From Eukaryota sp. TZLM1-RC (taxonomy: Eukaryota > Protista > Metamonada: BaSk clade), in assembly GCA_040285825.1 (NCBI GenBank), contig JAUPSS010000005.1, positions 62,001 through 126,000 of the forward strand: a stretch of 64,000 bases of DNA. The letters run 5' to 3'. The position numbers and the translations under genes are program-made. The notes under the pieces were generated by a model. That model had not been told where the DNA came from. It was given only the letters and a program-made list of their open reading frames with translations, and did no database searches. Positions 5,272 through 52,011 of the stretch are shown one piece after another (position 1 is the first letter of the stretch; every line of letters starts with the position of its first letter).

Positions 5272-5327
5272 GTCCCTCTACATCGTTGTAAAAAGGACAC
5301 GTATTTCATTGTTATAGACATCATCTG
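5272..5327 (+). promoter_or_regulatory. Conserved start-codon-proximal hairpin element, copy A
   Basis: GTCCCTCTACATCGTTGTAAAAAGGACACGTATTTCATTGTTATAGACATCATCTG ends 2-5 nt before ATG. Related copies occur at 5 other genes. Confidence 0.6.
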
Positions 5328-5329
5328 TA

Positions 5330-6106
5330 ATGATGACAAATCTAATATATCTCTTAATATGTTATTGGCTTTTTTGTATAGGAAGTTATGTACTGAAGAT
5401 CCGTGGGCTTCCTTTGTTTAACAGACTAGGGAATCTTGGTAAGCTCCAAACAACACACCAAAAGTTGGACTGGGGTCTTTGGTTCACACATAGAGTGTCT
5501 TTTGTAGTGTTTTATGGCATTGGTAGCATTGTCATTCCTTCTATTATGATCATCTCATGCTTTCGACCTACTTCTCTTTCAAATTCACTGGGCTGTTTGC
5601 TTTATACTCTACATTGTCTCCGCCGTCTGTTGGAGTCATTATTTGTACATAGGTATGGATCCCACAGAATCGGTTTTTTGAACTTCTTTGCAGGAATCTC
5701 TTACTATTTTGCTGCACCTCTTAGTGTTTTTGTTTCTTCTCAGTTCGAACCAGTATACTTTATGCCTTTTAACATTACCGTTGTTTTGACTATTTTTTTC
5801 ATTTTCATCTCATTTATTCAATTTTCCTGCCATTTATGTCTCTCTAGGCTGAAGAAGTACACCCTTCCAAGTATGTTGTGGTTTCGTTCTTTAGTTTGTC
5901 CTCATTATTCTGCTGAAATAACCATTTATTTTCTTATAATATTTTATTTTTCTGAAAGTTTAAACTCCCTAGCTTTACCTTTACTAGTTTTTGTTTTTGT
6001 TTTCATAAACCGAATATGGGAAACCAAACTCTCAAAACAATGGATGATTTTAAAGTTTCCTGAGTTTAAAACAGTAATCGAAAAAAGAAGGATATTTTTT
6101 TGGTGA
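5330..6106 (+). CDS. SRD5A3: Polyprenol reductase / 3-oxo-5-alpha-steroid 4-dehydrogenase (SRD5A3/DFG10 family)
   Basis: Multi-TM protein with HCLRRLLESLFVH, QFSCHLCL and LVCPHYSAEITIY motifs. Confidence 0.85.
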   Translation: MMTNLIYLLICYWLFCIGSYVLKIRGLPLFNRLGNLGKLQTTHQKLDWGLWFTHRVSFVVFYGIGSIVIPSIMIISCFRPTSLSNSLGCLLYTLHCLRRLLESLFVHRYGSHRIGFLNFFAGISYYFAAPLSVFVSSQFEPVYFMPFNITVVLTIFFIFISFIQFSCHLCLSRLKKYTLPSMLWFRSLVCPHYSAEITIYFLIIFYFSESLNSLALPLLVFVFVFINRIWETKLSKQWMILKFPEFKTVIEKRRIFFW

Positions 6107-6203
6107 TTTTCAGATTTCATTTACACTGTAAATTATATCCATGTTTAGTAAACTTCTATATACAAAATATATGCAAAAGTATTCAAATTATATATAAATA
6201 CAT

Positions 6204-6575
6204 CTATTCCATCACGACCTCTCCTTGTGTCTCCATTTCAGTATCAACTTCTTCAGTGGCCAATGCATGATGTTTTTGATGAAATCGCCAGCTTTGGAAT
6301 TGGGTGGATCGCAAATAGTTGAGAAAGTTTGGGTTTTTACAAGAAGATCGAAATTGATCATTCTGCAGTAGGTCAAGAACAACCAGAGCATGTGGGTACA
6401 TAATGAACTTGGAATATGGCTGCAACTTCCAGTACTGAAGATAATTGAGGTAATTGACAAATCGATGATCATCAAGATATTTGTTGTTTACAAGATGCTG
6501 TAAGTAATCAATACTGCCGAGTGCAGTGACGAACTCAAGTTCAGCTTGAAACCGAAAGTCGTTGCTCTCTTGCAT
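6204..6575 (-). CDS. MED31: Mediator subunit 31 (SOH1); start taken at the first ATG (the ORF track extends to a GTG at 6650)
   Basis: RFQAELEFV..L...YLQHL....YL.D.RFVNYLNYLQYWK...YSKFIMYPHAL is the SOH1 signature. Confidence 0.92.
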   Translation of the reverse strand: MQESNDFRFQAELEFVTALGSIDYLQHLVNNKYLDDHRFVNYLNYLQYWKLQPYSKFIMYPHALVVLDLLQNDQFRSSCKNPNFLNYLRSTQFQSWRFHQKHHALATEEVDTEMETQGEVVME

Positions 6576-6949
6576 TAGAGTTGACCAAGTCTTCCAATGA
6601 TGTTTGATTGTGATATGCAGTGGTTCAGTGTTTGATGGATTATCAGACACTGTTATTTGAAAGAAACAATGCTAGTAAAACAAAATGATTTCTTGTATTT
6701 GTTCTGTTTTACTTAATTATGATCTCAAATTATTGGATTAATTTACATATAAAACACGCTACTTAAAGCACTATAATGACACTATTTTTCCTAGCAACAG
6801 TAATCAAATTTTGATTATCTAAAGTTGTAGAGGTTGACAAATGTCACACTCTGACTCTTTGTTTTGTAGAACAAACCAAAAAATTGAAATTTACAATCTC
6901 AAGGAAACTAAAATATCTTACAGCACAATAAACACATTAAAAAATGACA

Positions 6950-7777
6950 TCATATTCTTCTCTTACCAAAAAATTTCAGTTTGACTCGTTTCCATAAACC
7001 ACTTCTGTAAACCACAACAGCACCATCACAATCCAGACCCGACACAGTTCCGACACAATCAAATTCTGACTCATCCACTTGCTGATCAGCGCTATTTAAA
7101 AGTACTTTGGTCTTGGGTAGGTCGGGGAATATGTCGGCGGTTTCCTTACCAAGTTTTTTCATTTTCAACATATGATAAGTGACTCCAAAATAGAATAGAT
7201 TCAAAAACAAAGGGATAAAGACCATCACAAACAACAACTCTATTCTAGGGTATTTCTCAAGAGGAAGCATTATCCATTCTGTAAAAGCAGTGAGAACAGG
7301 AATCCAAAGAGATATACCAAATGCAAGAATCAACTTTGTCACAACGACTATAGATAACCAAGCAATCATTTGTGGAATCCAGTATGAAAGGTCAGGAACA
7401 TTAGGATTAGCTCCATAGTAGCCAGACTTTAACTTGATGTAACCCATTTTAGTAACAAAGATTACTTGGAAGGCCCGGTGAAACAAAAAGTTGAGAAAGG
7501 TACCAAAGAAGGTATCTGCTGACGACACCACAACATAAAAACCACATGACGTGTCCCCTGTTTCACCAAAAAACAAAGCAATGAATATGTTTAGGAAATG
7601 CTGCAAAAAAGAAGAAAAGACAGATTTTGATACGTCAAAGAACCAAACACGCCACGGACGAAGAGGTCGTTCTCTAAATCTAAGGTAGAGTAGATATGAA
7701 AGTGCGAGGGCACCCATCAGTGACTGTACAAGGACACTGAAGATACCGACAAGGTCACATTGAGGTGTGTCATCCAT
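6950..7777 (-). CDS. STIMATE/TMEM110 (YPL162C-like) membrane protein
   Basis: CDL.G.FS..VQ.LMG...L..L...R.RERP.RPWRVWFFDVSK and SGYYG motifs; several TM helices. Confidence 0.85.
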   Translation of the reverse strand: MDDTPQCDLVGIFSVLVQSLMGALALSYLLYLRFRERPLRPWRVWFFDVSKSVFSSFLQHFLNIFIALFFGETGDTSCGFYVVVSSADTFFGTFLNFLFHRAFQVIFVTKMGYIKLKSGYYGANPNVPDLSYWIPQMIAWLSIVVVTKLILAFGISLWIPVLTAFTEWIMLPLEKYPRIELLFVMVFIPLFLNLFYFGVTYHMLKMKKLGKETADIFPDLPKTKVLLNSADQQVDESEFDCVGTVSGLDCDGAVVVYRSGLWKRVKLKFFGKRRI

Positions 7778-7804
7778 CGCTAGCTGAAATAATTATAGCA
7801 CTTA

Positions 7805-7860
7805 TAGATATTGTCTATAACAATGACACAAGAGTCCTTTTTACACTGATGTAGAGGGAG
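7805..7860 (-). promoter_or_regulatory. Conserved start-codon-proximal hairpin element, copy B
   Basis: Minus strand reads CTCCCTCTACATCAGTGTAAAAAGGACTCTTGTGTCATTGTTATAGACAATATCTA, 27 nt upstream of the ATG at 7777. Confidence 0.6.
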
Positions 7861-7995
7861 CTAGTTTTTGAGAAATGGAAGATTTCCCCTTGATACCCTT
7901 CTCCTTGAACCTTCATCAACCTTGGCTCTTTGTAGGTATACTGGTCTATCTCCACCATTTAATTCATTTTGTTTGTCTACATATCATAACCTACA

Positions 7996-8463
7996 ATGGT
8001 TCTTAGAGGTCCTTCTTTTTCTGGTGAACAACAGTCCTGTCACTCGCGCTCTTATTGGGATGTGCGTTTGGAAAAATTGGAAAAACAAAAGGAAGAGGCC
8101 ACCTCCGATTTGTTCAAAGACTGTTCGTTTTACTTCAATGGAAGAACTGGATGCAGTGTAGGTTCACATCACCTGACCAAGATTTGTCAAAGGAATGGAG
8201 GAACTGTCACTCCTCACTTTTCATGTAAACGAGTCTCTCATGTTATTTGCACAAATCTTAGTTCTTCCAAAACAACTGATGCCCTTACTCGCAATGCGCC
8301 AGGTCGAATGAAGAAGATTCACTACATTACAGGACAGTGGATACTAGATTCGATTCAGTTGGGACGTCTAGTTTCTGAACAACCATATTGCGTTTTACCA
8401 AAAAGGAAGAACACTATTAAAGATTTTTTCAAATCAGGAAATAAACAATCAAAAGCGGATTGA
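7996..8463 (+). CDS. Small BRCT-domain protein resembling the REV1 N-terminal BRCT
   Basis: YW..RLEKLEKQ...LFKDCSFYFNG.T, NGG, VSHVICTNL and QWILDSIQLG.L..E.PY. Confidence 0.75.
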   Translation: MVLRGPSFSGEQQSCHSRSYWDVRLEKLEKQKEEATSDLFKDCSFYFNGRTGCSVGSHHLTKICQRNGGTVTPHFSCKRVSHVICTNLSSSKTTDALTRNAPGRMKKIHYITGQWILDSIQLGRLVSEQPYCVLPKRKNTIKDFFKSGNKQSKAD

Positions 8464-8776
8464 TTCAACAGAGCCAGGGATAAATAAAGATGGTCAAGTT
8501 AATAGAGTCGGAAGCTGTCAATCACTAGTTTTGACGTATTATTTTATGCAAGCAACGTGGAAATTTGTCCCTAAAGAAAAAGTTTGCTCAAATATCCTCC
8601 AGACTTTGTTTGTTGTACCATTGATTGTTTTTGCAATATAAATCTGTTTCTATCTACTTTAACCAGTATTCATTACTTTATTGTGATTAGAAAAATTAGT
8701 TTTTTAGAAAATTTAATAAATTGTGCTGCATTGAATCATTAAACATTATATTTTAATTCATTCTAAATTGAATTAA

Positions 8777-9733: not shown

Positions 9734-9799
9734 TCTTTAGGGTATAGGAAATTCCCATAAATACACGATCAAATTTCGTGTGGAGCAATTACAAAAACT

Positions 9800-12083
9800 A
9801 TCAACTACACAGATACTGAGGTCTTTCATTTCCACCCCACTCTTGCTTCAGCAATTGCAAACATATTCAGACAAGCCAACTTATTTCTATTGAAGAGCTT
9901 TGTTGAGCGTTTGTTACTGAGTTTGCAACTCTCACTATTACAAGCTAATAAACCATGACATGTAGTAACAGCAGTCTTTTCTCTTCTATAGAATTTGGGA
10001 TTTGTGACTCTCAAAAACGTATGAACCTTTTCAAAACAAACAGGACATTTTGCTGAAGTGAAAGCCTCATTAATCATCAATACTTCAAATCTATTTCTTT
10101 TCAGAAATTGAATTTATCCAATGCCTCAAGTAGGTCTCTGATGTTTCAAATTCTTGGAACCTTTTTTACCATAATCACCCATTAGTATTAAAGTGTCTTT
10201 TGGGTCGCCAAAATTCTGAACCAGGCTTTTTAACAACCAACTTTCAGTCTTTTGCTTGTGAATAAAAGCTTGCATTTTATGAATGCTCCACATGTCAAGA
10301 CAGTAAAAGTCATTGTCAAAAAACTTGCCGATGTTTGGCAACCACAAAGTTGGAAAAATCTATAAAAGATGCTGATTTGGCAACAAACTTGGATAATTCG
10401 GTGTTTGCATCTTCAATTGTCATTTCGTTAGACTCTATCAATTGGTTCCTGTCGTTATCTACTTCAGTATACTTTGTCGCCCATCGATTTTGCTTTTCAT
10501 CCATCCTACTTTTCAAAGACCAGGACATCTGAGTCTTTCTCAACCATTTGTACTTCTTGTCTTGATTCATCACCCGACTATTTCTTTGCTGTTCAGTTTC
10601 ATGTTCAGGCACCATGGCTAATTCTTGATCCGTTTTTTTTGACTCCCAAAATACAATAAATCACGTTTTCCAGGATCACAAACAACAATTCGTTTGTCTT
10701 GAAAAGCATCAACATCAACATCATCAATATATAAATCAGAAATACTGGCCTTGTTGTCTGGCTTACATTTCTGACCTTGTTAATCCTGACGAACAAATTC
10801 TACTGCAATATTAAATCCATCTGTGTGGATAATATTGTTGAAATTATAAATCTTTTGCTTGAACATTGGTTGGTTTAAATCTAGAATATTAGACCAAAAG
10901 TCAAATTGCTGAGGTGGTTTCAATTTTGTAATTTGGGCTAGTGTATTGACCATTTTTAATCTCTGATCGGACAACAAATCGTCCATCAATGTTTGTCTAA
11001 TAATTGTCCATATTGTTCTTGTATCAATAGGAAAATATCCAGGGCCTACAGTGGTTGAAACAGGAGAAATGTGATAAGGTTTCCTCTGTACTGGAGATGT
11101 ATTGGGCAATTGTAATTGCTGGTTTTAGGAATAATTGAGGATCTATTTCAACAGCGTCTTCAAGAAAATGTATATCCACTGGAAATATGTTATCAACTAA
11201 ATTCACGTCAGTGACCAAATTCTCAATTTGGCAAGTAAATGGCTCAATAAGACCTTCAAATATGTCTCTAAGTTCATTATTTCTTATATGATGTTGTTCA
11301 CATAAATCGAAAAATTCATCATTCAGAAGGTCTGGAATATTTTCAGGATGATGAAACAAAGAACTCAAGCAATCTATTTCGTCCACTAAAAACAAGTTTT
11401 TGAATTGACGAAGTCTAAATGTATACAGTGAAATAATTGTAGATAATGGCGTTGAGTATCCACCCAGCTTGTGCATTTCTGATAACACATTTTCCACATC
11501 TGGTTTGTCAAAAAGACATTAATAAATCGATTAATATGTTTTTCATAATTTAGTTTAAAATTATTCTCAAAATTGGCAAACATTACTGGGGCCATATACT
11601 CAGGTGGTCTACTGAATCCATCAGTTGGAAATTGTGGAAAAACTCAGGCCTATATCTCAAATGGTCCTCCTAACTTATAGTTTTGTTCAACTTTTGTTGT
11701 TCAAAGGTAGTCGATAATCCATAATCTCCTGCACGATAATCAAAGTTTTCAAAATCCTCTGGAAATGCACTATTTGGTTTCAGCATTTCTTGCCCATAAT
11801 ACTCAGCTGAAATATAACGAATTCTGGCCAACAATGACTCATATAATTGGGCAGATATTCGTGGTGGTAAAAAATTACGTTCAAAACAAGACTGTAAATA
11901 CAGCTTTAAGCAACAAGTGGTGTGAATACGTAACTGTTGAAATTTTACAGCAGTTTCTCTCAATTTGAGTATCACATTTGAATGTTTAACCATTGAGTTG
12001 ACGGTTGCTCGAATGGTTTTATCAGATGATATAATATTTTGTCTTTCTGAAACAGCACAAAAAGTTTCAGACAAAGGATACAA
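9800..12083 (-). mobile_element. Near-full-length Fanzor pseudogene (family 1)
   Basis: Colinear pieces: N-terminal HTTCCLKLYL; FENNFKLNYEKHINRFIN; IHTDGFNIAV; RuvC-I VVCDPGKRDLLY (about 10650-10690); ILMGDY; RuvC-II INEAFTSAKCPVC; CHGLLAC...C; RuvC-III FNRNKLACLNM; ERPQYL. Many frameshifts and stops. Confidence 0.9.
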
Positions 12084-12950
12084 TCATGAAGCCCATATTG
12101 AATCGAATTTTGCATTAGAGGAGAAGAAGCTAAACAATCAATTGGCAACACATGGGAAAATTCCTGATGAAGTTTGATTTTCTTTTCATAAATCATTTTG
12201 TATGCCAGATTGCCTAATCCATGTCCGTAGGGTATTTTAATAAATTTTTTGGCAAATAACAAATTATCTAAAAGAAAAAAGCCATTCTACCCTGATGACA
12301 ACTTCTCTCCATCTTGGTGAAAGTTGATTGAGTACACCAATTGTTGAATCATCTGGAACAGCAAATCAAAGTAATTCAATCTATTTTTTAAAACCTGTAA
12401 ATCAAATTGCATTAAATTGTGATTAGGAAAACAATGGGGTTGATGATTACCAATAATGTTTAAAAACCTACGAAGCAAGGTTTTTTCGTCAGAGAATATT
12501 TCTACCTGAACATCCATATCAATGTCTGGTAATCTGATTTGAGGACTCATTCTCAATAAAAGTGAATATTTACTCTCCAAAAAGAAATTATGGTGATCAA
12601 ACTTCCCATCAACAATCGAAATTAAAAACACTTTTTAATCAAAAAATCCACTCACCCATTGGCTCATCAGTTTTCTTTGTCAAAAGATTTGCACCCTCTT
12701 TTCTCTTTTTGTTGATAATGTCGTGAGGAAAAGGAAATTTGCCATCACGATTTTGGTAAGGATGAGCATTCTGATAGGTTTCAAAATCAAAGCACATAAC
12801 AGTGGGAAGATTTTAATTTGGGGTCATTGATTTGAATTGAATCAATGGATCATGCTTGAAGTCACTCAAACTTGGCTCAATTTTGTTGACCATACTCGGT
12901 TTCAATGGTTTTTTTGTCAAAATCTTCCTGTTCTCGATATTCAACATTGT
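12050..12950 (-). pseudogene. Family-B DNA polymerase-type 3'-5' (DEDDy) exonuclease domain, degraded, directly upstream of the Fanzor
   Basis: ExoI MCFDFETY (about 12772-12797); FSDEKTLLRRFL; ExoII HNLMQFDLQVLKNR; GFFLLDNL..AKK; GLGNLA; ExoIII YGLHDCILCLKL. No polymerase palm motifs follow. Confidence 0.75.
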
Positions 12951-13220: not shown

Positions 13221-14236
13221 TAGCACCATGGCTGATTCAACAGCACCCATATCATGACTCACATGATGACTGAAAAAAGTGCAAAAAAAAGACTAAAAGT
13301 ACTCTGCTGTTCTTGTTAAGAACAGGTTGAAGGAGGAGGTGGGAACCGGGTCCGTTACCTCGTTATCATTTTTCTCGTTTCGCTGCATAAGGTTAGAGAA
13401 ATGGGAAGAGTCAAGATAATCTCGCTGTCTGACATGCTGATTACAATTTCAAATTGTTTGTTAATTTCCACAATAGTATCAAATGCCTATCTACTGTATC
13501 TCTATTAGTGGTCATCAACATCAGCTCAATTTACTCTCTAGCTGTTCTGGTCGTTGTTACTCCGTCTGAACTCTATGTTTTTTTCCAGTTTCCTTCTCCT
13601 TCCTTTACCTCTTGTCCTCTTCCCATTCAGCTATCCCAACAATTCTCCCTTGCTCTCTCCCTCCCTGTTTCGACGGGACCTAAACAAATGCTTGTTTCCC
13701 TAGTTTCTACTCTGTCCACAATTCTAACTCAATACAGTCTTCTTCAGGGTATGGATTTATTTGATTTTCAGATTTTCAAAAGCAAAACCATTGTTTATTC
13801 AAAGACTGAGCCAGTGAATTCGATTGCAATTGGGTGGAGTTGGAGTGTTATTTAGACAACAAGGCTAAGGAAGATGAAGACACTTTGATTGATTAGTTCA
13901 AAAGGGAAATATTTTCGTAATTTTTGCCGTTATTGTAACGTGGAAAACTTTTTGGAAACCTTTGAACAGAACAATATAATTATGCATTTCTAATAGTCCA
14001 ATCTGGGATTGATCTTGAAACAATCCTTTCATATTGTTCCCAGACAAAAATTCTTTAAAATCGTGAAAGAGTCATAATTGTTGGGTTCAGTATATTTGAC
14101 TTTGGATTTTGAGTTAGTTTCAAATTGGTACACAGTGCAAAAAGTAGGGGTATATTTTCAATCTTTTGTGGTCATTCACTTACAATTGAACTCATTAGCT
14201 TTGAGCTGTTAAAATTTGAAATAGGGGGAATTGATT

Positions 14237-15420
14237 GTATTTATTGAATTTGCACACTTAATTAAATTAACTCATAACTAATGGGACGACTATCATTAAA
14301 CCAAGATTTCCTCTACAAAATCTTGATCTGCTTGCTGTCTAGCTAAAGCTTCTCTTAATCGATTGAAAAACCGTGGTAATCTATTAATAATGGCAAATTG
14401 AATCCGTGAACGCCATAAAAAAATATCAAATCTTTTCATTGTTTTTTCTTGCACCATTTTTTGGAAGTCATTCAAAAAAGTTTCTGCTTCATCTGATAAT
14501 CTTCCATTTATCGAAAATGGGAAAGCAATAAAAACCAGCTGTGTATTTCTATCGACATTGGCCTCTTCAATATCTTTATCATATTTTCTATGTTTCTCTT
14601 TTGCTTTAAAATCCAGAGCAGCCACAGGATTAAGTTTTCTTCTGTGAACCAAAGTATCATTTGCAACATTACATGAGACAAAGTCAACAATAGCTTCAGA
14701 ATTATCAATCCAATCACAGTATACATCACCTTTATCATCAGAACCAAAATTATTCAGAGAAAGTGTTTCCTTCAGCAGAAGCTCTTTGATACACGATATT
14801 CTTGCAGTTTGTGCCATATTGAAAACAGTGTCTGTAGCAGCATCATGTAATGAAGAACGATAAGTTATCATATTAGAGCAATTCAGAGCATGGCGCAAAG
14901 TGAGTAGAGGTGAATTCGAACAAATACATTTTCTTTTGATAATAATTGATTAATGGGGATGTTCAAATATAATCTCATTTTTGTTACAAATGCTTCATAA
15001 GTGGCACACAATCCAAATCTTCGTGGTACAATGGTTACAAAAAGTAAAGAATCTGACGACTTGTTTTCACAAACACCCCTTTCCAATAATAATGAGTGAA
15101 GATCTTGATTTAAAACAGCCGAGCTGCATTTATTATTATAAAGATCTTTTTCGTACATTCCAGTCAATCGTTTCTGTAATGTTCGAAGAGTGTACTTCAA
15201 ATTTAAAACATTTTTTTCTGGAATATTGCCATTGAATGATTGGGGAAAACATCGAACCCATTTTTCTACATCAATTTTTGAAATTTCTTCATTTAATGCA
15301 AAAACAATGGAACATTGCGTTGTCATCAATAAATCTTCCCAATCTGCAAATCTTTCGGAAAACTCAAAGATTGCATTTCTGCATCCACCAACAAAAGGGG
15401 AATTGAGGAATTCTAAAATG
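14237..15420 (-). mobile_element. 5'-truncated RLE-type non-LTR retrotransposon, family A copy 1
   Basis: LRHALNC...LHDA, GDVYC...IVDFV...KEKHRKY, FIAFPFSINGRL; 3' AATAAA. Nearly identical to 62011-63015. Confidence 0.88.
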
Positions 15421-17646: not shown

Positions 17647-19099
17647 TCAGCTTTTCTTTTTATATTTTCTAAATCTATTTAAATAAGCCTTACCACTATC
17701 TTCATTTTCAATCTTATCATCAACCCTTTTATCGAGTTCTTCTCTTGCAGCCAATCGTTTAGCATCATAAACATTCTTCCTTTTCCTTACAAATCTTTTC
17801 AAGGCAGTGTTCCTCCCCCTAGTTTTCCTTTTCTCTCTTGCTTCAGCTCTTTCTTTTTCTGTTTTTTCAGGACGAAGACCAGCAGCCATTTGCTTCGAAA
17901 CAATTCCTTTCATGCGTCGGCTTTCGCTGCAGAAAGTCTTTCCTATTGAAACATTTTTATCATAGACAATCATCTCATGTGGAATCTTTTCCAACAACCT
18001 ACGAACTTCATTTTCCCTACGCTGTTTCTTTGTCTCGAATGGATTACCAGCATTATGATCAATATTGGCTTCCCCAGCACCTGGGACCAAAATACTTGAA
18101 TAACCATGGTTACTACCAACGCCCAAAACATCTTCAAATGGACAAAACTCTACAGATTTGACTAAAGTGTTTAATTTATGGTTGAGATAGGGTGAATTTG
18201 CTTTGCTTTCAATAGCATTGCTCCATACTTGTACCTTAGTTCCTAGACCCACAGCCAGCATTCCAGAAGAAGAAACATCCAAAGAAGTGCAGGGTGAGGT
18301 AATCTTGTAGGAATGCAAAAGAGACAGAGTTCGTAAATCATGAACGGCCATTTGGAAATCTTTTCCTGTCGATATCAGGTAATGACCACTCTTGTCCACC
18401 ACCATTGAAGTAACAGGGCCCATGTGGCAAAACATTTGAACATGAGGCTCACTAACTGAAGGGGACCATAAAGTCACTACTCCTCTTGAATCACCATTGA
18501 AAATCAAGCCACTGGTTGGGTCCTGTGATAGGCATGAGCACGGCCCTGCTTTGGTTTTATGGGAAGCAACTACATCGCCTGTGCTGGTATCTTGATAAAC
18601 TAACCTTCCTGTTTGACATCCAGAAACTAAGAGGTAATGGTAAGGAAGATACTGCAGGTGTCGAGGCTGAGGATGGTGCTTGAGGGCATGAACTTCTAGT
18701 CCTTGGTGATCATAGATGAAAAGACCTGGGGTTAATGGAGTGGAAATAAAAAGAATTACCTTTGGACTGAGCTATAGCATATAAAGAGTGATTGTGCAGG
18801 AAACAAGCATCATAGCAACTATCTCCAGTGTTGAACTCTGTCAATATGCGCCTCTTGCGCCATTCCATTAATGAAGTATGTCCTGATGATCCAGCAAGTA
18901 ATAAGTGTTGTCCATTACGGTCAAAGCGAGCTGTATGAGGTTGTGATAGTTTAAGATCAAAGATTTTCTGTTGGGATTGCTGATCAATATGTTGGGCGAT
19001 ATCAGATTGTGTAAACTTAAAGGTACGTTCTACCCCTTCAGTTTCCAGACACCCTGATGATTCTGTCAGAAGAACAGTCTCATCATATTTCAAGGACAT
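17647..19099 (-). CDS. UTP7: WD40 SSU-processome protein Utp7/WDR46 (BING4), two exons with intron 18726-18759
   Basis: Splicing GTAATT...TTAACCCCAG restores AQSKGLFIYDHQGLEVHAL and joins both ORFs. FCPFEDVLGVG and PGAGEAN.D....NPFETKKQRRE.EV form the BING4CT domain. Confidence 0.92.
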
Positions 19100-19133
19100 T
19101 TTTTGAGTGTGATGGAGTTGTTATAATTTTGAA

Positions 19134-20072
19134 ATGGATTCACCTTCTCTTGCGATTCTTGTATTATGCCTTGTCATACTATCTACAACACATCCTGATT
19201 ACAAGACTGTAGATCCCTATAGCAACAATAGGTTCCCTTCTCCAACAAACTCTGATGATTTCGACCTCTATCATCTAGCACAACATCCATCTCCACGACC
19301 ATCGTTGATCGATTTTGAGCAAATCCAGTCAATCGGCCATTTCAGTGGTTTGCCAATTGTTGCCCATAAATTGATTATGGATAATCCAGTAGGTAACTTG
19401 GCAGCACTACCTCCAATTGGTGGATGTGGAAATCGCGTGGATGTCGTTGAATCTGCCAAACATTATAACTGCAGTGCTGCAGTAAATGCTGGGTTTTTTG
19501 ATATGGCAACTGGAGCTTGTTACACCTGGCTTGTCTCAAACAGCACATGGGTCAATCAACATGGTACAGCAAATGCGTTTTGGGGAATCACTCGTGCCAA
19601 TCAATACATTAATGGTTACCTTACTCAGAACACTATCAATGAATTGGTTGAACAGGGAGAACTCTTAACAGGGTTACAAGGTCTAACATGGCTAGTGAGA
19701 GGAGGAGAAGTTTACATTGATGAAAGTATTCAACGAGAGAAGCCCTCCAAGGCATTTGTTAAATTGATTGCTCCAAGACTAGCTGTTGGTCATGACAAAC
19801 TAGGAAGGTTCATTGCCATTCAAGTTGATGGTTTTGAGCCAGCGAAATATGGTGTTGATCTATATGACTTTGCACATCTATGTAAACAACAAGGGATGAT
19901 TTCTGCCATTAATCTAGACGGAGGAGGTTCAGTCACTGTACTTTACAACAACCAAATTAAAAATAGTTGCTCTGATGCTTGTAGAGGGGATATCTTGGAG
20001 AAGCGGTGTCCGGTACCTTATGGTGGTTCCAAGTGCCTTCGAAAAGTGTCTTCCTTTGTTTGTTTAAAATAA
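19134..20072 (+). CDS. NAGPA-like phosphodiester glycosidase (uncovering-enzyme/DUF2233 family), probably secreted
   Basis: Signal peptide; AVNAGFF, APRLAVGHD..G, VDG and AINLDGGGS motifs. Confidence 0.85.
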   Translation: MDSPSLAILVLCLVILSTTHPDYKTVDPYSNNRFPSPTNSDDFDLYHLAQHPSPRPSLIDFEQIQSIGHFSGLPIVAHKLIMDNPVGNLAALPPIGGCGNRVDVVESAKHYNCSAAVNAGFFDMATGACYTWLVSNSTWVNQHGTANAFWGITRANQYINGYLTQNTINELVEQGELLTGLQGLTWLVRGGEVYIDESIQREKPSKAFVKLIAPRLAVGHDKLGRFIAIQVDGFEPAKYGVDLYDFAHLCKQQGMISAINLDGGGSVTVLYNNQIKNSCSDACRGDILEKRCPVPYGGSKCLRKVSSFVCLK

Positions 20073-26853: not shown

Positions 26854-27561
26854 CTATTGGATTTCATTAACAGATGGATTAAGAGGACTGTCAAGATTCG
26901 TTGCATATAGTAAAACCTTTAGTTCGTCAACAGGAACGTTATCGTTGTTTTGACTTAATTGTTCAATCATCAGTAGCTTCTTAAAGTAAAAGTTCCTTTC
27001 CTTTTGAAGAACATCAACTTGTTTCTGTAAGGCAGTAAGTTGAGCCTCGTCAACAGTGGTTCTGTTCGTATCTTGGGAAGAGAAGCTTGGGTTAGATGTG
27101 GATCTGCGGGGGGCTGTTCTTCGTGGTAGCATTGAGGGTCTCCGTTGGCGCTGTCCCTGGTTAGTCTGGTTAAGCTTCTCTACTGGTATGCCGTCACTGT
27201 TGGACTTGCTGTCAAAAAAACTTTTGAACCACTGAATAGTTTCTAAATTGCACATGTAGTTTTTGGTAGATAATCTCGCTAAGTCAATGTCTCTTTTAAT
27301 ACCAGCCTTTCGGAATATAGACTGTAGGTATTTGAGATTGCGTAGATTGTCATGTTCAAGAATTGCATTGAAGTTGACTTTTGAGAGGTTCACCAGGTCT
27401 GGATAGAGGAGGTGCATAATTTGACAGTAAACAACACCGTTGCCCAGCTCCTCAATTTTTTGGACATTTGTGTTGAAGAGAGTATTAATCCATTCTAAGA
27501 TCTCTGTGCGGGATACAAAGAACGCACCATTCATCATACCAAGAGAGTCAGACTTGCTCAT
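26854..27561 (-). CDS. EB1: Microtubule end-binding protein EB1 (MAPRE/BIM1)
   Basis: FVSRTEILEWIN...KIEELGNGVVYCQI CH domain and KERNFYFKKL..IE EBH domain. Confidence 0.93.
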   Translation of the reverse strand: MSKSDSLGMMNGAFFVSRTEILEWINTLFNTNVQKIEELGNGVVYCQIMHLLYPDLVNLSKVNFNAILEHDNLRNLKYLQSIFRKAGIKRDIDLARLSTKNYMCNLETIQWFKSFFDSKSNSDGIPVEKLNQTNQGQRQRRPSMLPRRTAPRRSTSNPSFSSQDTNRTTVDEAQLTALQKQVDVLQKERNFYFKKLLMIEQLSQNNDNVPVDELKVLLYATNLDSPLNPSVNEIQ

Positions 27562-27619: not shown

Positions 27620-27770
27620 CATACTTTCTTCAAGCATCATTTAAACTTATTCCAAGAACTTTCATCCTTGGTGAGATCGTCCACAGACGTTCTAGAATCC
27701 TCGAATAATTGGCCACCAATCTTAGTGGGCCCATTTCTCCTCTAGAACAATACGTAGCTTTGAAGCTAGT
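27620..27770 (-). ncRNA. Putative Fanzor omegaRNA scaffold
   Basis: Five stems directly 3' of the Fanzor stop codon: TAGCTT/AAGCTA; GTTCTAGA/TCTAGAAC enclosing GGCCCACTA/TGGTGGCC; CGTC/GACG; CCAAGGA/TTCTTGG. Confidence 0.6.
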
Positions 27771-36687: not shown

Positions 36688-37290
36688 CTACCAATCACTT
36701 GGACTTGAATCATCAGGAATCTCGTCCTCACCATCAATTTCTTCTTCACTACTCGAACACGAGCTTGCACCACCAAGAGAAAACACATTACTTGGTAGAT
36801 CAAGTGAAATGGCAAAGTCGGGGTGGGTAGGAACCTGTGGAGAACAAGGGGTAACTATTTCTGGACTTGAAGGAGGTTCGGGTTCAGGGATCTTTTTGAT
36901 TGGATGGAGATCAATCTCAGTAGATACTTTATCATCGTTATCTTGTTCTTGTTGGTGTTCATGTTGGGGAGATGCGGGTGGTGAGACGACAGGTCTTTTG
37001 AATGCACTTTTCCCTTCAATATACGCCTTGACCTTGAGGTTGTGGGATTTAAGAATACGACCAAGTTGGTAACGGGCAAATTTGTAGCCTTTCTTTCGAA
37101 GATATTGCTCCATTGTCGTTTGGTTGTGCTTTTTCTCTATAAGTTCCTTAAGAAGTGAAACAGGAACATCAGTCGACTGCCCTTTGAACAACCTATTTCT
37201 CCTACGCCATTTGCCAGGAGGTCTATTCTTAGGAACTGGCCGATGGCCAATGTCAAAATTGGCCAAGTCAATGGGAGGATTGGAAGTCAT
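36688..37290 (-). CDS. Hypothetical basic protein with a possible HTH and an acidic/proline-rich tail
   Basis: 200-aa ORF. LLKELIEK......EQYLRKKGYK.ARYQLGRILK is HTH-like. Preceded by the conserved upstream element. Confidence 0.65.
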   Translation of the reverse strand: MTSNPPIDLANFDIGHRPVPKNRPPGKWRRRNRLFKGQSTDVPVSLLKELIEKKHNQTTMEQYLRKKGYKFARYQLGRILKSHNLKVKAYIEGKSAFKRPVVSPPASPQHEHQQEQDNDDKVSTEIDLHPIKKIPEPEPPSSPEIVTPCSPQVPTHPDFAISLDLPSNVFSLGGASSCSSSEEEIDGEDEIPDDSSPSDW

Positions 37291-37295
37291 TCTTG

Positions 37296-37540
37296 CAGAT
37301 ACTGTCTATAACAATGGAATAAGTGTCTAATGTAGAGGGACAAGACTGAGGGATTTGGTCTGTGGACTCTGATTACATCTACTCCAATTCGATTAAAATT
37401 GCCCACCTCTAATGAGCAATCAATATCCTGTGGAATACTGCTTTCGCCAGACTCATCTTTTAATAATCTAATTGTTTTTTCAGTCATTTGATTAATTATA
37501 CTGTTGTTTAAATCCATCCCATGCTGTTGGTCTTCACATG
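37296..37540 (-). repeat. Upstream cassette shared with 51374-51602, including conserved element copy C (37296-37341)
   Basis: 37413-37538 aligns closely with 51479-51601; the terminal motif ends 5 nt before ATG. Confidence 0.75.
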
Positions 37541-37669
37541 GTTGAATGGATGAATTACCATGCCAGAAGAGGTACTTATTGATATAAAGTCTCATTATGA
37601 ATATCATCCCTTATTCTTTTAGATTTGGACCTTTTCAGTTCAAAACTTTTCTTTATACATATTTGTTTC

Positions 37670-38520
37670 AAACAAAATTGTAAAAAACTAAAAATCAATC
37701 TCCTCAAACTCCACATCTACTATGGAAAACTTACGTACAGCATTTTCCTCATAAAATTTTTCTAGTGATAACAACGAGCTAGACACGAGGCTATACATTC
37801 CCTTAAAAATAGAAAATACAATTCTGTTTTGCCAAAAGGTTCGGTCAAATATTCTTCCAGTTCTGTTTTTGACAATAGAAGAGAATTCGTCCTCAAAACT
37901 TCGTACTTGATTGCACTTGAAAGGAACAAGTCTGTATGAAAGGTTTTTTGAATGAGTCATTCCTGTTTGTAAATTATGCAGAAAAACAGAGTAGATTTAA
38001 CTAAATCAGCAGCAAGGGTCATTTTTGGATATTGGGAAAATTTTATGCCAGTGTCTTCAATGTATTTTTCTTTTTCTTTGAATATTTTTGCAGTTACCTT
38101 GTGTTGTGTCAAGGATGTACTTTGAATTTTCTGAACAAAGTTTGGTGTTTGTTTCGTATCTATTTTCCAAATAGTGTTTCATGCAGAAACAAATGAGCAG
38201 TTTTGTCCTTACATTGATCAGCCAACTTTTGACCAAGAACGTCTTTATCTTAGGCAAAGAACAAGTCCAACACAGATCTGCCTTACACAAAGTTGGTTTC
38301 AAACACATAAAAGGAACTTCTGCTTCCAATTCAATAATTGGAACCGAAAATGTATTTGTTTGGGTAAATAGGGGTTTGAGAACTTCAAATTTATTCAAAG
38401 ACCTCAATTCTTCACAGAAGAGTTCCAATTTGGTCGTGGATATTTTTCATAACGTTATGTGTTTTAAGTCATAAATTTAATACTTTTGAGATGATTTAAG
38501 CATAAATTTCGAGTGCAAGG
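37670..38520 (-). mobile_element. Internally deleted RLE-type non-LTR element remnant
   Basis: YRLVPF...GRIFDRTFWQNRIVFSIFK C-terminus, with upstream post-RT-like sequence. Confidence 0.7.
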
Positions 38521-41445: not shown

Positions 41446-43080
41446 TTAATAATCAAAGCTACCAGACCACCTGCCCCTATTTGGCTGTTGTCTTCCTCCC
41501 CCTCTTCTAAAGTCCTTACTTCCGTACCTAGAACCACCTCTTCTAGAACCACCAGACCTGAAAGATTGGCGAGACATTTCAATCAGCCAACTAGGGACAA
41601 TCTGCCCAGAGTCTTCCAAAATTTCCTTTAACTTTTGGAAAATTCCAGCATCACTTTCATTCAAAAAGGTAGTAGCAAGTCCTGTATTACCAGCTCTTCC
41701 AGTTCTACCAATTCTGTGCACGTAATCATCAATGTTGTTAATACCTCCATAATTGATGACGTGAACAACGTCTGAAATATCCAAACCTCTGGAAGCAACG
41801 TCTGTAGCAACCAAAACAGGAGTTTCACCTTTTCTAAAAAGAGCCAATGCTTCTTCGCGTTCTCTCTGGTCCCTATCGCCATGAATAGAAGTGGCAGGGT
41901 ACCCATTTTCATTTAAGAATATTTCTAGATGATCAGCATCTCTCTTAGTTTCTACAAAAACCAAAGTTCTGCCAGGTACATCAGCTAAGAGATTCATCAA
42001 CATGTGTTTCTTTTCTCTATCTGGAACAAGTTCGAGACGTTGAGTAATGTTATCAGTAGTTGATCCAACTCGGCCAATTGCCAAAAAGACATAAGAATCC
42101 AAAAAATCCTGAGCTAAGCGTTGAATTTGCTCAGGAAACGTGGCGGAAAACATCATAGTTAATCTATTAAACTTATCTGGCATCTTGTAACCATCCACGA
42201 TTTCCCTGATTTGAGGTTCGAATCCCATATCAAGCATCCTGTCAGCCTCATCCAAAACAAAGTATTGAACATTAGCAAGAGACACTCTGTAACGATGACA
42301 GTAATCAATAAGTCTACCAGGGGTGGCAACAAGAATATCACATCCAAACTTTAATTCTCGTAATTGAGGGCCTTGAGGAGCACCACCGTAAACAACTACA
42401 GACCGAAGACCAGTCTTAAAAGCAAACTTCTTGCACTCAACATGAATCTGACTTGCTAGCTCACGTGTGGGCGCCAACACGAGGACAGAAGGGGAGGCGG
42501 AAGATGAACTTGAGGGAGGAGGGGGAGGGGAGGAGAGGAGGTCAGCAATGCAAGGGATGAGAAAGGCGGCTGTTTTACCAGAACCTGTCTGGGCACAAGC
42601 CATCAAGTCTCTCTTTTCTAAAGCTACTGGAATTGAGTGCTTTTGCACAGGTGTTGGCTTGCGGAATCCAGCTCTTTCCACGTTCCATTTTAGCTGGTGT
42701 GGGAGGTCAATTTCGGTGAAGAGGGTTATTGGGGCAGGGGCTGGAGGATTGGCTGAGGTCTCAACGGGTATATCATCATAGCGGTCAAAGTTAATACCAG
42801 TGTTAACGCTGTCACCAAAGATTTCCTGTTCAGACTCATGGAATGTACGGAAACTTGTATGAGAGCGAGAACGGGGTAGATGACGACGGTGGTTATCTCT
42901 ATGATGACCACGATATTCGGGAGGGGGACTGGGTTCAACAAGAGCACTAAAACGGTCTTCGCTAGAAGATTTTGGTGTGGAAGTTCTGGGAGGAGCTGAC
43001 CGAGATGGTGCGGGTGGAGCGGTGGGTTGCTGTTGTTCAGCAGCCATTTGAGCACGTTTTGCGGGCGGAATATAACTCAT
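41446..43080 (-). CDS. DED1: DEAD-box RNA helicase DDX3/Ded1
   Basis: NTGINFDRYDDIPVE; AQTGSGKT; PTRELA; DEADRMLDMGFEPQIR; SAT; HRIGRTGRAG. Confidence 0.95.
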   Translation of the reverse strand: MSYIPPAKRAQMAAEQQQPTAPPAPSRSAPPRTSTPKSSSEDRFSALVEPSPPPEYRGHHRDNHRRHLPRSRSHTSFRTFHESEQEIFGDSVNTGINFDRYDDIPVETSANPPAPAPITLFTEIDLPHQLKWNVERAGFRKPTPVQKHSIPVALEKRDLMACAQTGSGKTAAFLIPCIADLLSSPPPPPSSSSSASPSVLVLAPTRELASQIHVECKKFAFKTGLRSVVVYGGAPQGPQLRELKFGCDILVATPGRLIDYCHRYRVSLANVQYFVLDEADRMLDMGFEPQIREIVDGYKMPDKFNRLTMMFSATFPEQIQRLAQDFLDSYVFLAIGRVGSTTDNITQRLELVPDREKKHMLMNLLADVPGRTLVFVETKRDADHLEIFLNENGYPATSIHGDRDQREREEALALFRKGETPVLVATDVASRGLDISDVVHVINYGGINNIDDYVHRIGRTGRAGNTGLATTFLNESDAGIFQKLKEILEDSGQIVPSWLIEMSRQSFRSGGSRRGGSRYGSKDFRRGGGRQQPNRGRWSGSFDY

Positions 43081-43085
43081 TCTTG

Positions 43086-43111
43086 CAGATATTGTTTATG
43101 ACAATGGAATG
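43086..43111 (-). promoter_or_regulatory. Partial conserved start-codon-proximal element, copy F
   Basis: Minus strand reads CATTCCATTGTCATAAACAATATCTG-CAAGA-ATG. Confidence 0.55.
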
Positions 43112-43156
43112 GGAAGATGATAAAGTAATCAATAATACAACATTTCAAGACCACTG

Positions 43157-43410
43157 CATCTGAGTCATTCTCAACCATTTGAATTTCTTGTCTTGATTCA
43201 TCAACTCTTCTTTGCTTTCTCTTGGATCACACTATGAGAGAGTTGCATCTAGTGTTTTTGTTCTGGGAGAGATGGATTTTTTAGATGTTGATTTATAGGT
43301 TTTGAATAAAATTAAAATTTTGGTAAAAAAAGATTCATCAACCGAGTATTTCTTTTGCTGTTCAGTTTCATGTTCAGGATCCGGGCTAATTCTTGATCCG
43401 TTTTTTGATC
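43157..43410 (-). mobile_element. Fanzor family-1 internal fragment interrupted by a retro-insertion
   Basis: 43157-43203 and 43341-43408 match contiguous 10525-10642. Confidence 0.8.
43206..43331 (+). mobile_element. 126-bp 5'-truncated non-LTR insertion with an 11-bp target-site duplication
   Basis: GATTCATCAAC at 43195-43205 and 43332-43342. The insert encodes SSLLSLGSHYERV...DFLDVDL*, then AATAAA and an A-tail. Confidence 0.85.
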
Positions 43411-44074: not shown

Positions 44075-45860
44075 GTGAAACTCAATAAATTATCTATCTC
44101 AATACTGTCACTTTACATGTCTAACCTTACAGCATCATTAATTAATGGCTCAGTCGGCCAAAACATTAACAGCAATCCTCCTCACCAGGAGAGTCCTCCT
44201 ACAAAGAAGAGTTATCTTTCCGTCAGGAAGAGTAGTCCTCCCCCTGGGAAGAGAAGCACTTCACCCGCAAAGAACGCTCCTCCTGCGGAGAGTAACATAG
44301 GCAACCACACCTATGACCCACACAACATTCTCCCTAATGAGATGAAGTTACCTCTTGGTGCGGGAAACCACCAGCTGCCTTCTAAAGTGACGGAAAGAAA
44401 TGAAGAGGATACCTCTAACACGTTCACCGGCCTCTGCGTTCTTGAATAAATTATTCAAAGCCCAACAGAGAGTTCCAGATAATGATCCTCTGTTCGCTAA
44501 CTGCCTCATCGACGCTCAGTCTGGACTAAAACTTTCCAAATCCGGAAAGATACTGGTTCCCTCATCCATGCGCTCTGAGATCCTTCTGCTTGCCCATGGA
44601 TCTATTGAAGCTGGCCACCCTCAATTTGCCGAATGCTGGAAATCTCTTCAACAATCTGATTTTCAGCGGCCTGATATGCGAAATGATTTATTAACCCATG
44701 TTAACGCCTGTATACCCTGCAAAAAGACTGCCCCTGTCCCCAAGACCACTATCTCCTCTACTGGATCTCTACATTCTGTTTGTCGCCCTTTTGAGAGTTT
44801 ACATTGTGATTCTATCGGTTCGCTCTCAGCCGATATTTATGTCTATAAGTATATAGTGCACTTCGTCGATGCTTTTTCTAAATTTTGCATCCTTGTCCCC
44901 ACCAAGGACCTTAAGGCCACTACCATTGTTAATGCCTTGATTTCCTCAGTTTACTCTGTCTTCGGTGCTCCTCGTCGAATCCACTCTGATAACGGCCCTG
45001 AATTTGCCAACAAGATATTCAGTTTGCTATGCCAATTCTTGAACATAGCACATTCACAATCACTTCCTCACTACCATCACTCCAATGGCCTAATCAAGCG
45101 CCAACATCGTTGTTTCCTCCAAGTAATCCGCCGAATGTTACTCGATTTCTCTGACTACCATAACTGGTCAGACTATGTTCCCCTGTGTCAAATGGTTTTG
45201 AATTCGCAGGAAAGAAAGGCTTTGAACACATACCCTTATTGTCTCATTTTTGGATCCGACACCTCTCCCCGTTTATTGCCCAACCAGCTTTTGAATTCAT
45301 TGTCCACACACCCTCTGCCTCCAGACAAACCCGAGTTCATCGATCACCTTCTGACCATAACGAAGAAGCTTCTAGCCTCATGGGAAGCAGTAACTCTATC
45401 CCCTGTTCCACTCCCCTCTGACGTTCCTGTACCTGCATATTGCCCTTAGACCAATGATAGAGTTTTTGTTCTGCGTGAGAAGCCAGACAAACTCCACGGT
45501 CACTTTGTAGGCCCCTATGTCGTCCTCAAAGTTCTCTCCCCTAGCTCTCTCCTGGTTCAGAACCCTGTCTCGGGATCATCTCTCAAAACAGCCACCCACC
45601 TTGTAAAGCCCTGCCTGTCCTCGTTGCCTCCAGAGATACTCGACGCTTATGTAGCTGCCGATTCAGGTGAGCTGATTCTTGACGCTATTATCGATATCAC
45701 TGATGAGTCCGCCACCGTGCTCTGATCCGATGGAACCACTACTGTTCAACATGTTTCCTCTATTCGGAACACTGCCGCGTACTCTAGGTACATCAAGCTT
45801 TCCGCCGATCCTCCTAAATCCCGCCGAAAAAGAAAAAGGAGGCAGTGTTAGCTGTGGCTA
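44075..45860 (+). mobile_element. Ty3/gypsy-type LTR retrotransposon remnant (integrase, PPT, start of 3' LTR)
   Basis: HHCC zinc domain (AHG....GH...CIPC); HCDSIG and HSDNGPEF; NGLIKR (Glu to Lys); GPY motif after a stop; polypurine tract 45826-45845 followed by TGTTAG. Confidence 0.88.
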
Positions 45861-50561: not shown

Positions 50562-50615
50562 AAATTTTAATTAAATTTAGTATCATCTTTTAAAAACTTT
50601 TTTAACCTTATTGTT

Positions 50616-51368
50616 TTATTTTAAATAAACTATACTTCTTTCAGCTTTTCTTCCTTCAATGTGCAGTAATACTTTGTTTGGAACTTCAAAAACCATAGAT
50701 TTACCAACTGAAATTGGTAAATTAAATAGAGAAACTAAATTCATTATATCAAAAGGGGCTCTCAGATCAAAAGGATCACGTGATCCGCTCGAAAAGAAGC
50801 AATTTTGACCCTTTGTGACTGAAAGTAATTGACTGACGTTGGAAATGAAATTCATTCTGGGTGTATTAAATGAATTATCTGGATCCATCAATAAATTGAA
50901 ATAAATTATTTCGAAATAAACTCCCCTTTTGAGAGCTTGCTTCAATTGTGTATGCTTGAGATGAAATGGTAGACGTTGAGACAGGTCAATTGAGATTACA
51001 TCCACTTCAAGCTCACCACAAGCTAACCTAAATGTATCTTCAGTGGTGGGTCTCACAGCCACCAGATCATACCCACGAAGATGACTGGAGTTTGTATTGA
51101 AAAAGTGGAGAAAGCTTCGTGATTCCAATACTATGGTGATTCTAGGGAGTAGTTGGACTGGGGGATTGAGAGAAGCTTGTATGTTGTGGAAAGAAGATAA
51201 AGGTGAGGACTCTATCACTGTATTTGGTGGAGGAACAGTGGCTTTGGGTGATGGCTGAAATATGGTTTCAATGGCTGCTATACCATATCCAAAGAGTCTA
51301 TGCTGGGCTATAATGCGAGACAACGTGCCTTTGGGACAGTTGCCACTCACACAAAGGTCTGCTATCAT
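50616..51368 (-). CDS. RPP30: RNase P/MRP subunit p30
   Basis: YDLVAVRP.....F..AC..LEVDVISID...RLPF.LK......A..RGVYFEI.Y; SSG......LRAPFDI. Confidence 0.9.
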   Translation of the reverse strand: MIADLCVSGNCPKGTLSRIIAQHRLFGYGIAAIETIFQPSPKATVPPPNTVIESSPLSSFHNIQASLNPPVQLLPRITIVLESRSFLHFFNTNSSHLRGYDLVAVRPTTEDTFRLACGELEVDVISIDLSQRLPFHLKHTQLKQALKRGVYFEIIYFNLLMDPDNSFNTPRMNFISNVSQLLSVTKGQNCFFSSGSRDPFDLRAPFDIMNLVSLFNLPISVGKSMVFEVPNKVLLHIEGRKAERSIVYLK

Positions 51369-51373
51369 TATTA

Positions 51374-51602
51374 CAGATGTTGTCTATAACAGTGGAATAA
51401 GTGTCCTATTTACTCTAACGTAGAGGGGATGAAAATCCTTTCAATAGACTAAATTCAAAAAGTTTGATCGCTATTTAGGAGCAATCAATATCTTGTGGAA
51501 TACTGCATTCACCAGACTAATCTTTAAATAATCTAATTGTTCTTTCAGTCATTTGATTAATTATACTGTTGTTTAAATCCATCCTATGCTGATGGTCTTC
51601 AG
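51374..51602 (-). repeat. Upstream cassette shared with 37296-37540, including conserved element copy D (51374-51429)
   Basis: Minus strand reads TCCCCTCTACGTTAGAGTAAATAGGACACTTATTCCACTGTTATAGACAACATCTG-TAATA-ATG. Confidence 0.75.
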
Positions 51603-51955
51603 AGTATTCTTTGTTGGATGGGTTACTTACCCTGGCAGTGTAGTTTGTTTTCAGTGTAAGCAATTGTTGTTTTAATAATACATTAATTCATTAATCATAT
51701 TCGATTTTTTCAAATGTCATTCTGTATCCTGCCTGTCATTTTTGGAATATCGTATTTTTATGATCAATAGAGTTTGTAACAATGCAGTTTGTAAAGCCTC
51801 CTTTGAATGTAATGAAATTGAATATTGCACGTCATGTTGAGATGTAACCACAAAAAGAATGCGACGAAATAACGTGAAGCCAGTCATGTTGTAATCAATG
51901 AATCTAAATGAACAAGGACTTTTGATTATTCTTTGCTTTTGGTTGTGTCACAGAG

Positions 51956-52011
51956 TGTCCCTCAACACTGAGTGTTAGGGACATCTTTATCTATTTTATA
52001 CACAACATCTG
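51956..52011 (+). promoter_or_regulatory. Conserved start-codon-proximal hairpin element, copy E
   Basis: TGTCCCT-CAACACTGAGTGTT-AGGGACA hairpin, then ...TTATACACAACATCTG 7 nt before ATG. Confidence 0.55.

Follow-up and report, generated by a model that had tools for sequence, protein, structure and literature searches.

Promoters of the fornicates Giardia and Spironucleus salmonicida are compact: the ~50-90 bp next to the start codon contain all of their motifs, whose positions are tied to the ATG. A TATA-like box stands at -20 to -60, another motif near -10 or -50 and an A-rich initiator at the ATG itself, and the 5' untranslated regions (UTRs) have a few nucleotides (PMC1885649; PMC3916229). 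Here we describe a conserved element of ~65-72 nt that stands before the ATG of six unrelated genes in a 64-kb stretch of a metamonad genome (positions 62001-126000 of contig JAUPSS010000005.1, assembly GCA_040285825.1, strain 'Eukaryota sp. TZLM1-RC'; the whole stretch is referred to as the window). The element is comparable to the fornicate compact promoters in its size, direction and box order. Contrary to the fornicate motifs, which are short, degenerate and presumably independent at each gene, the entire ~65 bp of the element, including the spacers, is homologous between genes (70-94% identity). Since the homology covers the whole unit and is linked to longer repeats, the element was copied and did not evolve in place.

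The source strain is a skoliomonad, probably Skoliomonas litria, a free-living anaerobic metamonad related to barthelonids and Fornicata. The region has ~35% G+C and is densely packed with genes, mostly without introns. Copies of the element were searched with an nhmmer profile built from the copies themselves, in 190.8 kb of non-redundant TZLM1-RC sequence (the window with its surroundings, 88 kb, and five loci of 20 kb each from other contigs; stretches outside the window are labelled L003, L197, L198 and L201-L205) and in 84 kb from the sister strains 'Eukaryota sp. TZLM3-RCL' and 'GEM-RC1'. The genome paper on TZLM1-RC mentions neither promoters nor motifs and reports RNA-seq, used for annotation, and no start sites; a full-text literature search with four sub-strings of the element returned nothing relevant. 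A scan of metagenome and viral contigs with a 16-base core gave 193 loci, all of them chance matches to a pattern too short for this purpose and none accompanied by the rest of the element.

The profile revealed exactly six matches in the window and none besides, and eight significant matches (E <= 3e-8) in the whole TZLM1-RC sample, two of them outside the window and one of these on another contig. In all eight cases the co-oriented ATG of an open reading frame (ORF) of at least 189 amino acids lies within -7 to +3 nt of the match end (+23 for the STIMATE gene). We estimate that ~0.7% of strand-specific positions in the sample are equally close to an annotated ATG on its upstream side, so that chance placement is excluded, and window shuffles gave 0.00 expected chance occurrences for the 23-nt core. 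No copy was found in any other context in the 190.8-kb sample. In this sample the claim of the preliminary description that no copy stands away from a start codon holds beyond the window, and the copies are neither randomly placed nor seen as ordinary paired terminal inverted repeats. Two partial matches below the threshold also fall exactly at start codons, one before an Arf GTPase gene and one before a pair of V-SNARE paralogues. The latter form a divergent pair in L202 (4018-4665, minus strand; 5346-5993, plus strand), are identical from -22 to +30 around the ATG, and have an upstream stretch (GCTATAGGGACTACATCTAACA-ATG) similar to the 3' core of the element. The remaining ~16 gene starts of the window were also considered for weak copies, which were rejected, as the alignment scores were within the null distribution.

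All six window copies were recovered where the preliminary description had placed them, each co-oriented with an ORF that agrees with the NCBI gene calls, and its distances between the terminal ...ATCTG/A and the ATG (2 or 5, 27, 5, 5, 5 and 7 nt) were confirmed. The copy at 5264-5329 (plus strand; profile E 4e-20) carries a 5' AAAACT extension, the first inverted repeat and the core ...TTGTTATAGACATCATCTG followed by TA, and abuts the ATG of an intronless gene for an SRD5A3-like polyprenol reductase (258 amino acids, 5330-6106, plus strand), in which a second in-frame ATG at 5333 stands at the canonical distance from the element. The copy before the STIMATE-family gene (275 amino acids, 6950-7777, minus strand) comprises the element proper at 7802-7868, ending in ...ATCTA, and a 27-nt spacer (together 7778-7868, minus strand). 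Before hyp200, a hypothetical gene of 200 amino acids with no Pfam match (36688-37290, minus strand), the copy at 37291-37344 (minus strand) has a 10-nt deletion that removes the 3' arm of the first inverted repeat. The gene for the DEAD-box helicase DED1/DDX3 (544 amino acids, 41446-43080, minus strand) is preceded by a variant copy at 43081-43135 (minus strand; profile E 1.3e-8), of which 43081-43115 is the 3' core. The RNase P/MRP p30 gene RPP30 (250 amino acids, 50616-51368, minus strand) has its copy at 51369-51431 (minus strand), and the gene for the tRNA (m7G46) methyltransferase Trm8/TrmB (241 amino acids, 52019-52744, plus strand) follows the most divergent copy (51952-52018, plus strand; 68-76% identical to the others), with the strongest first hairpin and the ATG 7 nt past ...ATCTG.

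The two copies outside the window stand before the bacterial-type glutathione synthase gene gshB, just to the right of the window (L201 15413-15486), and before a gene of 200 amino acids on contig 7 (L205 4924-4973). Paralogy of the latter product with hyp200 was rejected on comparison. The genes that bear the element are unrelated, and include the conserved single-copy genes DED1, RPP30, Trm8 and Arf as well as gshB. The prokaryotic-type gshB itself (L201 15484-16497, ~65133-66146 in window coordinates and outside the window) has a single eukaryotic relative among the matches found, in TZLM3-RCL (44% identity), all other matches being bacterial (33-38%), and was probably acquired by lateral transfer into the skoliomonad ancestor; it now carries the element.

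The preliminary description gave the length of the element as ~55 nt, which proved too short: three copies have the 5' AAAACT in common, and the conserved block continues through YAAK(A) up to the ATG. The ATG stands at a fixed distance in five of the eight copies. Conservation is much stronger in the 3' half than in the 5' half, and the 3' half persists in the DED1 and Arf variants that lack the first hairpin. Two subfamilies with diagnostic bases were distinguished: subfamily I with the SRD5A3, gshB, STIMATE and L205 copies (82-94% pairwise identity) and subfamily II with the hyp200, DED1 and RPP30 copies, the Trm8 copy being an outlier; the split tracks the upstream body attached, either a repeat termed R490 or the repeat blocks A and B. 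In the DED1 copy the 5' part is a different 20-nt segment, which is common to the Arf copy in L204. The DED1 copy was also considered as a truncation caused by a repeat insertion; this was rejected, and a variant subfamily that shares the 20-nt segment with the Arf copy describes it better. A young repeat of ~120 nt with copies 96-98% identical (window 43129-43400; L204 1739-1859 and 2785-2906; L198 392-496 and 857-958; L203 19586-19691) lies 80-220 nt upstream of the DED1 and Arf variant copies in either orientation. The idea that GTAAT, GCAAG or ATAAG after ...ATCT is a splice donor was rejected as well, because the real introns of this genome are 31-37 nt long with a CTAAC-type branch, and because at SRD5A3 the sequence past the ATG encodes a normal hydrophobic N-terminus. 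Their donors read GT(A/G/T)(G/T)GT, and a branch-like CTAAC/TTAAC precedes the AG by a few nucleotides (examples at L003 18990-19737, L197 6683-8294 and L198 13976-14921).

The comparison of flanking sequences revealed that in at least four copies homology extends past the 5' end of the element by 85-950 nt. The STIMATE and L205 copies share unbroken homology over 145 nt: contiguous with the STIMATE copy are ~100 nt of R490 (7866-7965, minus strand), homologous to L205 4974-5085 and to window 3650-3769. R490, the 490 nt upstream of the L205 copy, recurs at window 3372-3769 (plus strand; match over 492 nt, 85% identical) as a body without the element that ends in ...CAAAAACTC, exactly where the element would begin. 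Between hyp200 and L205, collinear homology covers ~950 nt upstream, with nothing alike past the ATG; it consists of block A (37410-37648) and block B (37944-38270; together 37410-38270, minus strand), which correspond to L205 5655-6336. Block A is found again at 51479-51638 (minus strand), 49 nt upstream of the RPP30 copy. The 5' extent of the copies thus varies from ~70 nt (SRD5A3, gshB, Trm8) through 152 nt (STIMATE) and ~0.95 kb (hyp200) to ~1.4 kb (L205). A common 3' end, a varying 5' extent, internal deletions and the lack of homology past the ATG indicate a dispersed repeat that is mobile or was so formerly. Judged from these alignments, the element forms the 3' end that the copies of a longer dispersed repeat have in common, and its two subfamilies carry different upstream bodies.

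In the sequence compared, the element is restricted to the TZLM1-RC lineage. The profile revealed no copy in the 84 kb of the two sister genomes, nor were shared cassettes found among ~20 upstream regions of each sister species. The closest homologues of DED1 and RPP30 are those of TZLM3-RCL and GEM-RC1 (55-65% identity), and in both strains the orthologues have unrelated upstream sequence. The N-terminus of DED1 in TZLM1-RC (MSYIPP) matches the conserved MSY[IV]PP of its orthologues, which makes its start codon genuine and ancestral. Thus, with an ancestral DED1 start, unrelated sequence upstream in the sisters and no copies in the sequence sampled from them, the sequence in front of DED1 was replaced in the TZLM1-RC lineage up to the original ATG, which would mean that native promoters gave way to the element.

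We hold with moderate confidence that the element, as the conserved 3'-terminal ~65-70 bp of a lineage-specific transposon-like repeat, acts as a complete, compact and directional promoter with a very short leader for any gene that it adjoins. Read towards the gene, such a promoter would consist of a C-rich, inverted-repeat upstream box (TCCCTCTACA...GGAC) at ~-65 to -40, then a CCATTG box near -30, TTATAG, which resembles a TATA box or an initiator, at -21, and ACAAYATCTG followed by the A-rich YAAKA directly before the ATG. Transcription would probably start between TTATAG and the ATG. The copies would derive from duplication or transposition of the repeat rather than from convergence, and would have displaced the ancestral sequence before the gene as far as the start codon; both this mechanism of copying and the position of the start site we infer from the sequence. 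Space is tight in front of these genes: the intergenic region of gshB has 155 nt and the divergent spacer between STIMATE and a BRCT gene has 218 nt, and in both cases the element fills most of it. Among 56 genes outside the families, CTATA (8 occurrences against 1.4 expected) and TATAG (6 against 1.4) are the top enriched 5-mers at -40 to -1, which suggests that the element carries a generic start-proximal motif of this genome. YTAT(T)AG, a motif defined post hoc, is present in 7 of 47 such genes against 1.9% in the background. Of the origins proposed in the preliminary description, a portable promoter from a transposon end is the best fit, as the element is lineage-specific, dispersed on at least two contigs and forms the 3' end of longer repeats; the attribution to Tc1/mariner within that proposal did not stand, for reasons given below.

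Transposon-derived promoters are familiar from solo long terminal repeats (LTRs), miniature inverted-repeat transposable elements (MITEs) and Helitron ends that drive neighbouring genes, usually from variable distances and as alternative promoters. The element is similar to these in being a dispersed lineage-specific repeat whose outward end lies upstream of host genes in sense orientation and may well provide them with transcription signals. In contrast to them, it abuts the ATG with equal spacing in five of eight copies and seems to be a sole-promoter replacement, including at essential single-copy genes.

A number of observations weigh against the promoter reading. Promoter activity is deduced from position, and the 5-mer enrichment is marginal (p 6e-5, ~0.07 after multiple-test correction). 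Random insertion would not yield an equal 5-nt spacing to the ATG in five of eight copies, so that either targeting or a start context supplied by the element has to be assumed. The genes that bear the element have no obvious function in common and no regulon can be named. As to its transposon-like origin, no terminal inverted repeats were found, and no inverted terminus marks the long copies at their 5' boundary; candidate target-site duplications (AATGGA flanking gshB, AAATCT flanking SRD5A3) are not significant in shuffles (p ~0.10-0.14), and no autonomous partner was found in the 190.8-kb sample. Furthermore, seven of the eight copies in this sample lie within 60 kb of one contig and the profile found none in 62 kb from three other contigs, so that the genome-wide picture depends on one further clear copy, that of L205.

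Along with this element, a second, unrelated family of ~70 nt (...TCCTCCATTAATCTCAAC...TGTGCTATTAGCCG) that runs up to ATG-TCY emerged when the stretches from -80 to the ATG were listed for every called gene. It fronts five host genes, coding for a TPR protein of 1605 amino acids, Paf1, a radical-SAM enzyme and two others, and its copies are found at L003 13510-13587 (just to the left of the window), L198 14916-14995, L204 13753-13828, 17953-18018 and 581-614, and at ~9740-9817 in L197, L198 and L203. Its 3' core (GCTATTAGCYR-ATG) also stands before one gene of a sister species and before one more gene of the window. The second family is present, in addition, within the left part of a TnpB/Fanzor-like transposon of 2.65 kb, where it fronts a leftward transposon ORF. 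The ~2.65-kb copies of this transposon (L197 9588-12230, L198 9587-12230, L203 9507-12235) are 98.9% identical, and it is apparently active. It encodes a protein of 231 amino acids (a 27-member 90% cluster) and one of 249 amino acids with a Cas12f1-like TNB domain. Older copies are found at window 53810-56221 (minus strand), L204 ~9870-12116, L205 ~10000-12419 and L202 ~1130-2206. In four of seven copies the right end of the transposon (...TTCACAGT) is followed by the ATG of a co-oriented host gene, at distances of 12, 27, 35 and 39 nt, and this end (...GTGAAATTCACAGT) bears inverted repeats. The element itself was also considered as an end of this transposon; this was rejected, since the profile has no match in the transposon copies and there is no positional link, and a tblastn search with the transposon proteins found no TnpB-type coding sequence upstream of any element copy.

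About one quarter of the non-transposon genes in the 191-kb sample carry one of three repeat-derived upstream ends. Repeat-derived ends close before the ATG are general in the TZLM1-RC genome, and the element is one of several such families. A further TnpB-like family, with ORFs of 343 and 162 amino acids and a TNB domain, was noticed at window 27766-29282 (minus strand), L197 15245-16310 and 19534-19917, and L203 5785-6233. In the window it ends ~200 nt before the co-oriented EB1 gene (26854-27561), and a piece of the spacer in between (27629-27687) is found again at 2771-2829, where it lies upstream of the TPR gene.

A bolder proposal, for which we see a limited chance, is that a few mobile and complete promoter-leader modules are inserted at start codons through a targeted process and wire a sizeable fraction of the genes. 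Such targeting might, for example, consist of integration for which the A-rich initiator directly before the ATG serves as the priming site. Should this proposal be true, wholesale promoter replacement by transposition would be a routine part of regulatory evolution in the compact genome of TZLM1-RC. On the favoured promoter reading itself, whole promoters would be copyable parts: a ~65-bp module that includes the start context would have replaced the native promoters of conserved genes within a single species lineage, and at least one other module would do likewise on a still-active transposon. The genome would offer a natural system for compact eukaryotic promoter function and for transposon rewiring under minimal intergenic space, and for the question of how genes acquired by lateral transfer, the bacterial-type gshB among them, gain eukaryotic expression signals. 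The element would also be a candidate promoter for genetic tools in a newly cultured deep-branching anaerobe.

Two alternatives place the element in the RNA. The preliminary description suggested a structured 5'-UTR regulator; the element would be transcribed as a 5' leader, and its hairpins beside the AUG or a sequence-specific RNA-binding site would confer common translational or stability control on the unrelated genes. We regard this as unlikely. The co-orientation is strict, the spacing to the AUG fixed, and two foldable inverted repeats are present: hairpin 1, which lies in the 5' half, and hairpin 2 (TTATAGA-N5-TCTRTAA), which adjoins the ATG in three copies and shows one change from G.U to A-U; the Trm8 copy forms an 11-bp hairpin 1 in a shifted register. 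The folding of the 5' half noted earlier was confirmed for ~five copies but is not universal, as its arm is deleted in hyp200 and replaced by other sequence in DED1 and Arf, and hairpin 2 is broken in four copies. In an alignment of seven copies none of 15 pairs had changed on both sides and 500 of 500 shuffles reached the observed values; folding z-scores are inconsistent among copies (-2.4 to +0.8). Rfam gave nothing at the gathering threshold for the whole window and nothing at E<=1 for 51300-52100, and a tRNA scan found nothing. On this alignment conservation is in the primary sequence, concentrated in the 3' half, and not in pairing. Moreover, 5' UTRs in relatives have only a few nucleotides (PMC1885649). 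The other RNA-level proposal of the preliminary description, that the copies are relics of a spliced leader of ~55 nt introduced through retroposition of trans-spliced mRNAs, is in effect refuted for those examined and retains a negligible probability. It would account for the short variable distance to the ATG, the co-orientation and the intronless genes, and dinoflagellate retrogenes do carry relic spliced leaders, likewise conserved leader-like sequences just before the ATG of many unrelated genes. The element, in contrast to these, has no fixed 5' boundary, since in four copies the homology described above runs 85-950 nt past the supposed leader 5' end, and shows neither tandem relics nor evidence of trans-splicing. 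No poly(A) tracts follow the six window genes, no copy is followed by a donor site or an Sm-like context (all eight are followed by an ORF), the junction at DED1 falls exactly at the ancestral ATG, and the second family sits within a transposon. To our knowledge, spliced-leader trans-splicing is not known in metamonads.

The remaining alternatives concern the origin of the copies as mobile DNA. They might be functionless relics of a transposable element whose integration prefers A-rich DNA 5' of start codons, for example the 3' tail of a non-LTR retroposon primed on the A-run before the ATG, with the genes driven by other signals or by read-through; we hold both the general proposal and this example to be improbable. 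In favour of it, the copies have one 3' end in common and are truncated to various extents on the 5' side, the terminal stem-loop stands beside a TGTAA-like end, reverse-transcriptase genes occur in the genome, and the TnpB-type transposon likewise ends 12-39 nt before start codons. Partner families of long and short interspersed nuclear elements (LINEs and SINEs) share 3' tails, and in a similar way two bodies, R490 and blocks A and B, are joined here to one ~65-nt tail with a terminal stem-loop, in copies that differ by 5' truncation and internal deletion. The copies depart from LINE/SINE families, however, in lacking an A-rich, poly(A), microsatellite or other simple-repeat tail and significant target-site duplications (flanking direct repeats p ~0.1), in having no LINE or other partner with the element tail in the sample, and in insertion sites restricted to start codons. 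The element also fills the only plausible promoter space of essential genes, so that some promoter function must lie within it or these genes would be silenced, and its 3' half is conserved well above the 5' half. As to terminal inverted repeats of a Tc1/mariner-type DNA transposon or MITE, the TA that follows ...CTG/CTA in three window copies and the inverted arrangement of the RPP30 and Trm8 copies, ~520 bp apart, had pointed that way, but this pair is 73% identical with each member nearer to other copies, it is the only inverted pair, the six other copies are unpaired, the 5' boundary of long copies has no inverted terminus, and the TA is absent in the hyp200, DED1 and Trm8 copies. Hence, the Tc1/mariner or MITE origin is very improbable. 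Of all the readings, the compact promoter carried at the end of a lineage-specific repeat is the one we favour.

Several other repeats and ORFs were observed in passing. An integrase fragment (rve and zinc-binding domain) of an LTR-type retroelement lies just upstream of the DED1 region (window 44075-45449, plus strand), and ORFs for reverse transcriptase are found at L203 1-1459 and L204 4240-5007. Two ATG-initiated ORFs diverge across 34 nt (window 18710-19099, minus strand; 19134-20072, plus strand); probably one of the two is spurious, or else they share an extremely small promoter. A 1-kb inverted repeat with short ORFs (window 14236-15240 and 62011-63015), 96% identical and 47 kb apart, is probably another repeat family, because related copies are present in L198 and L203.

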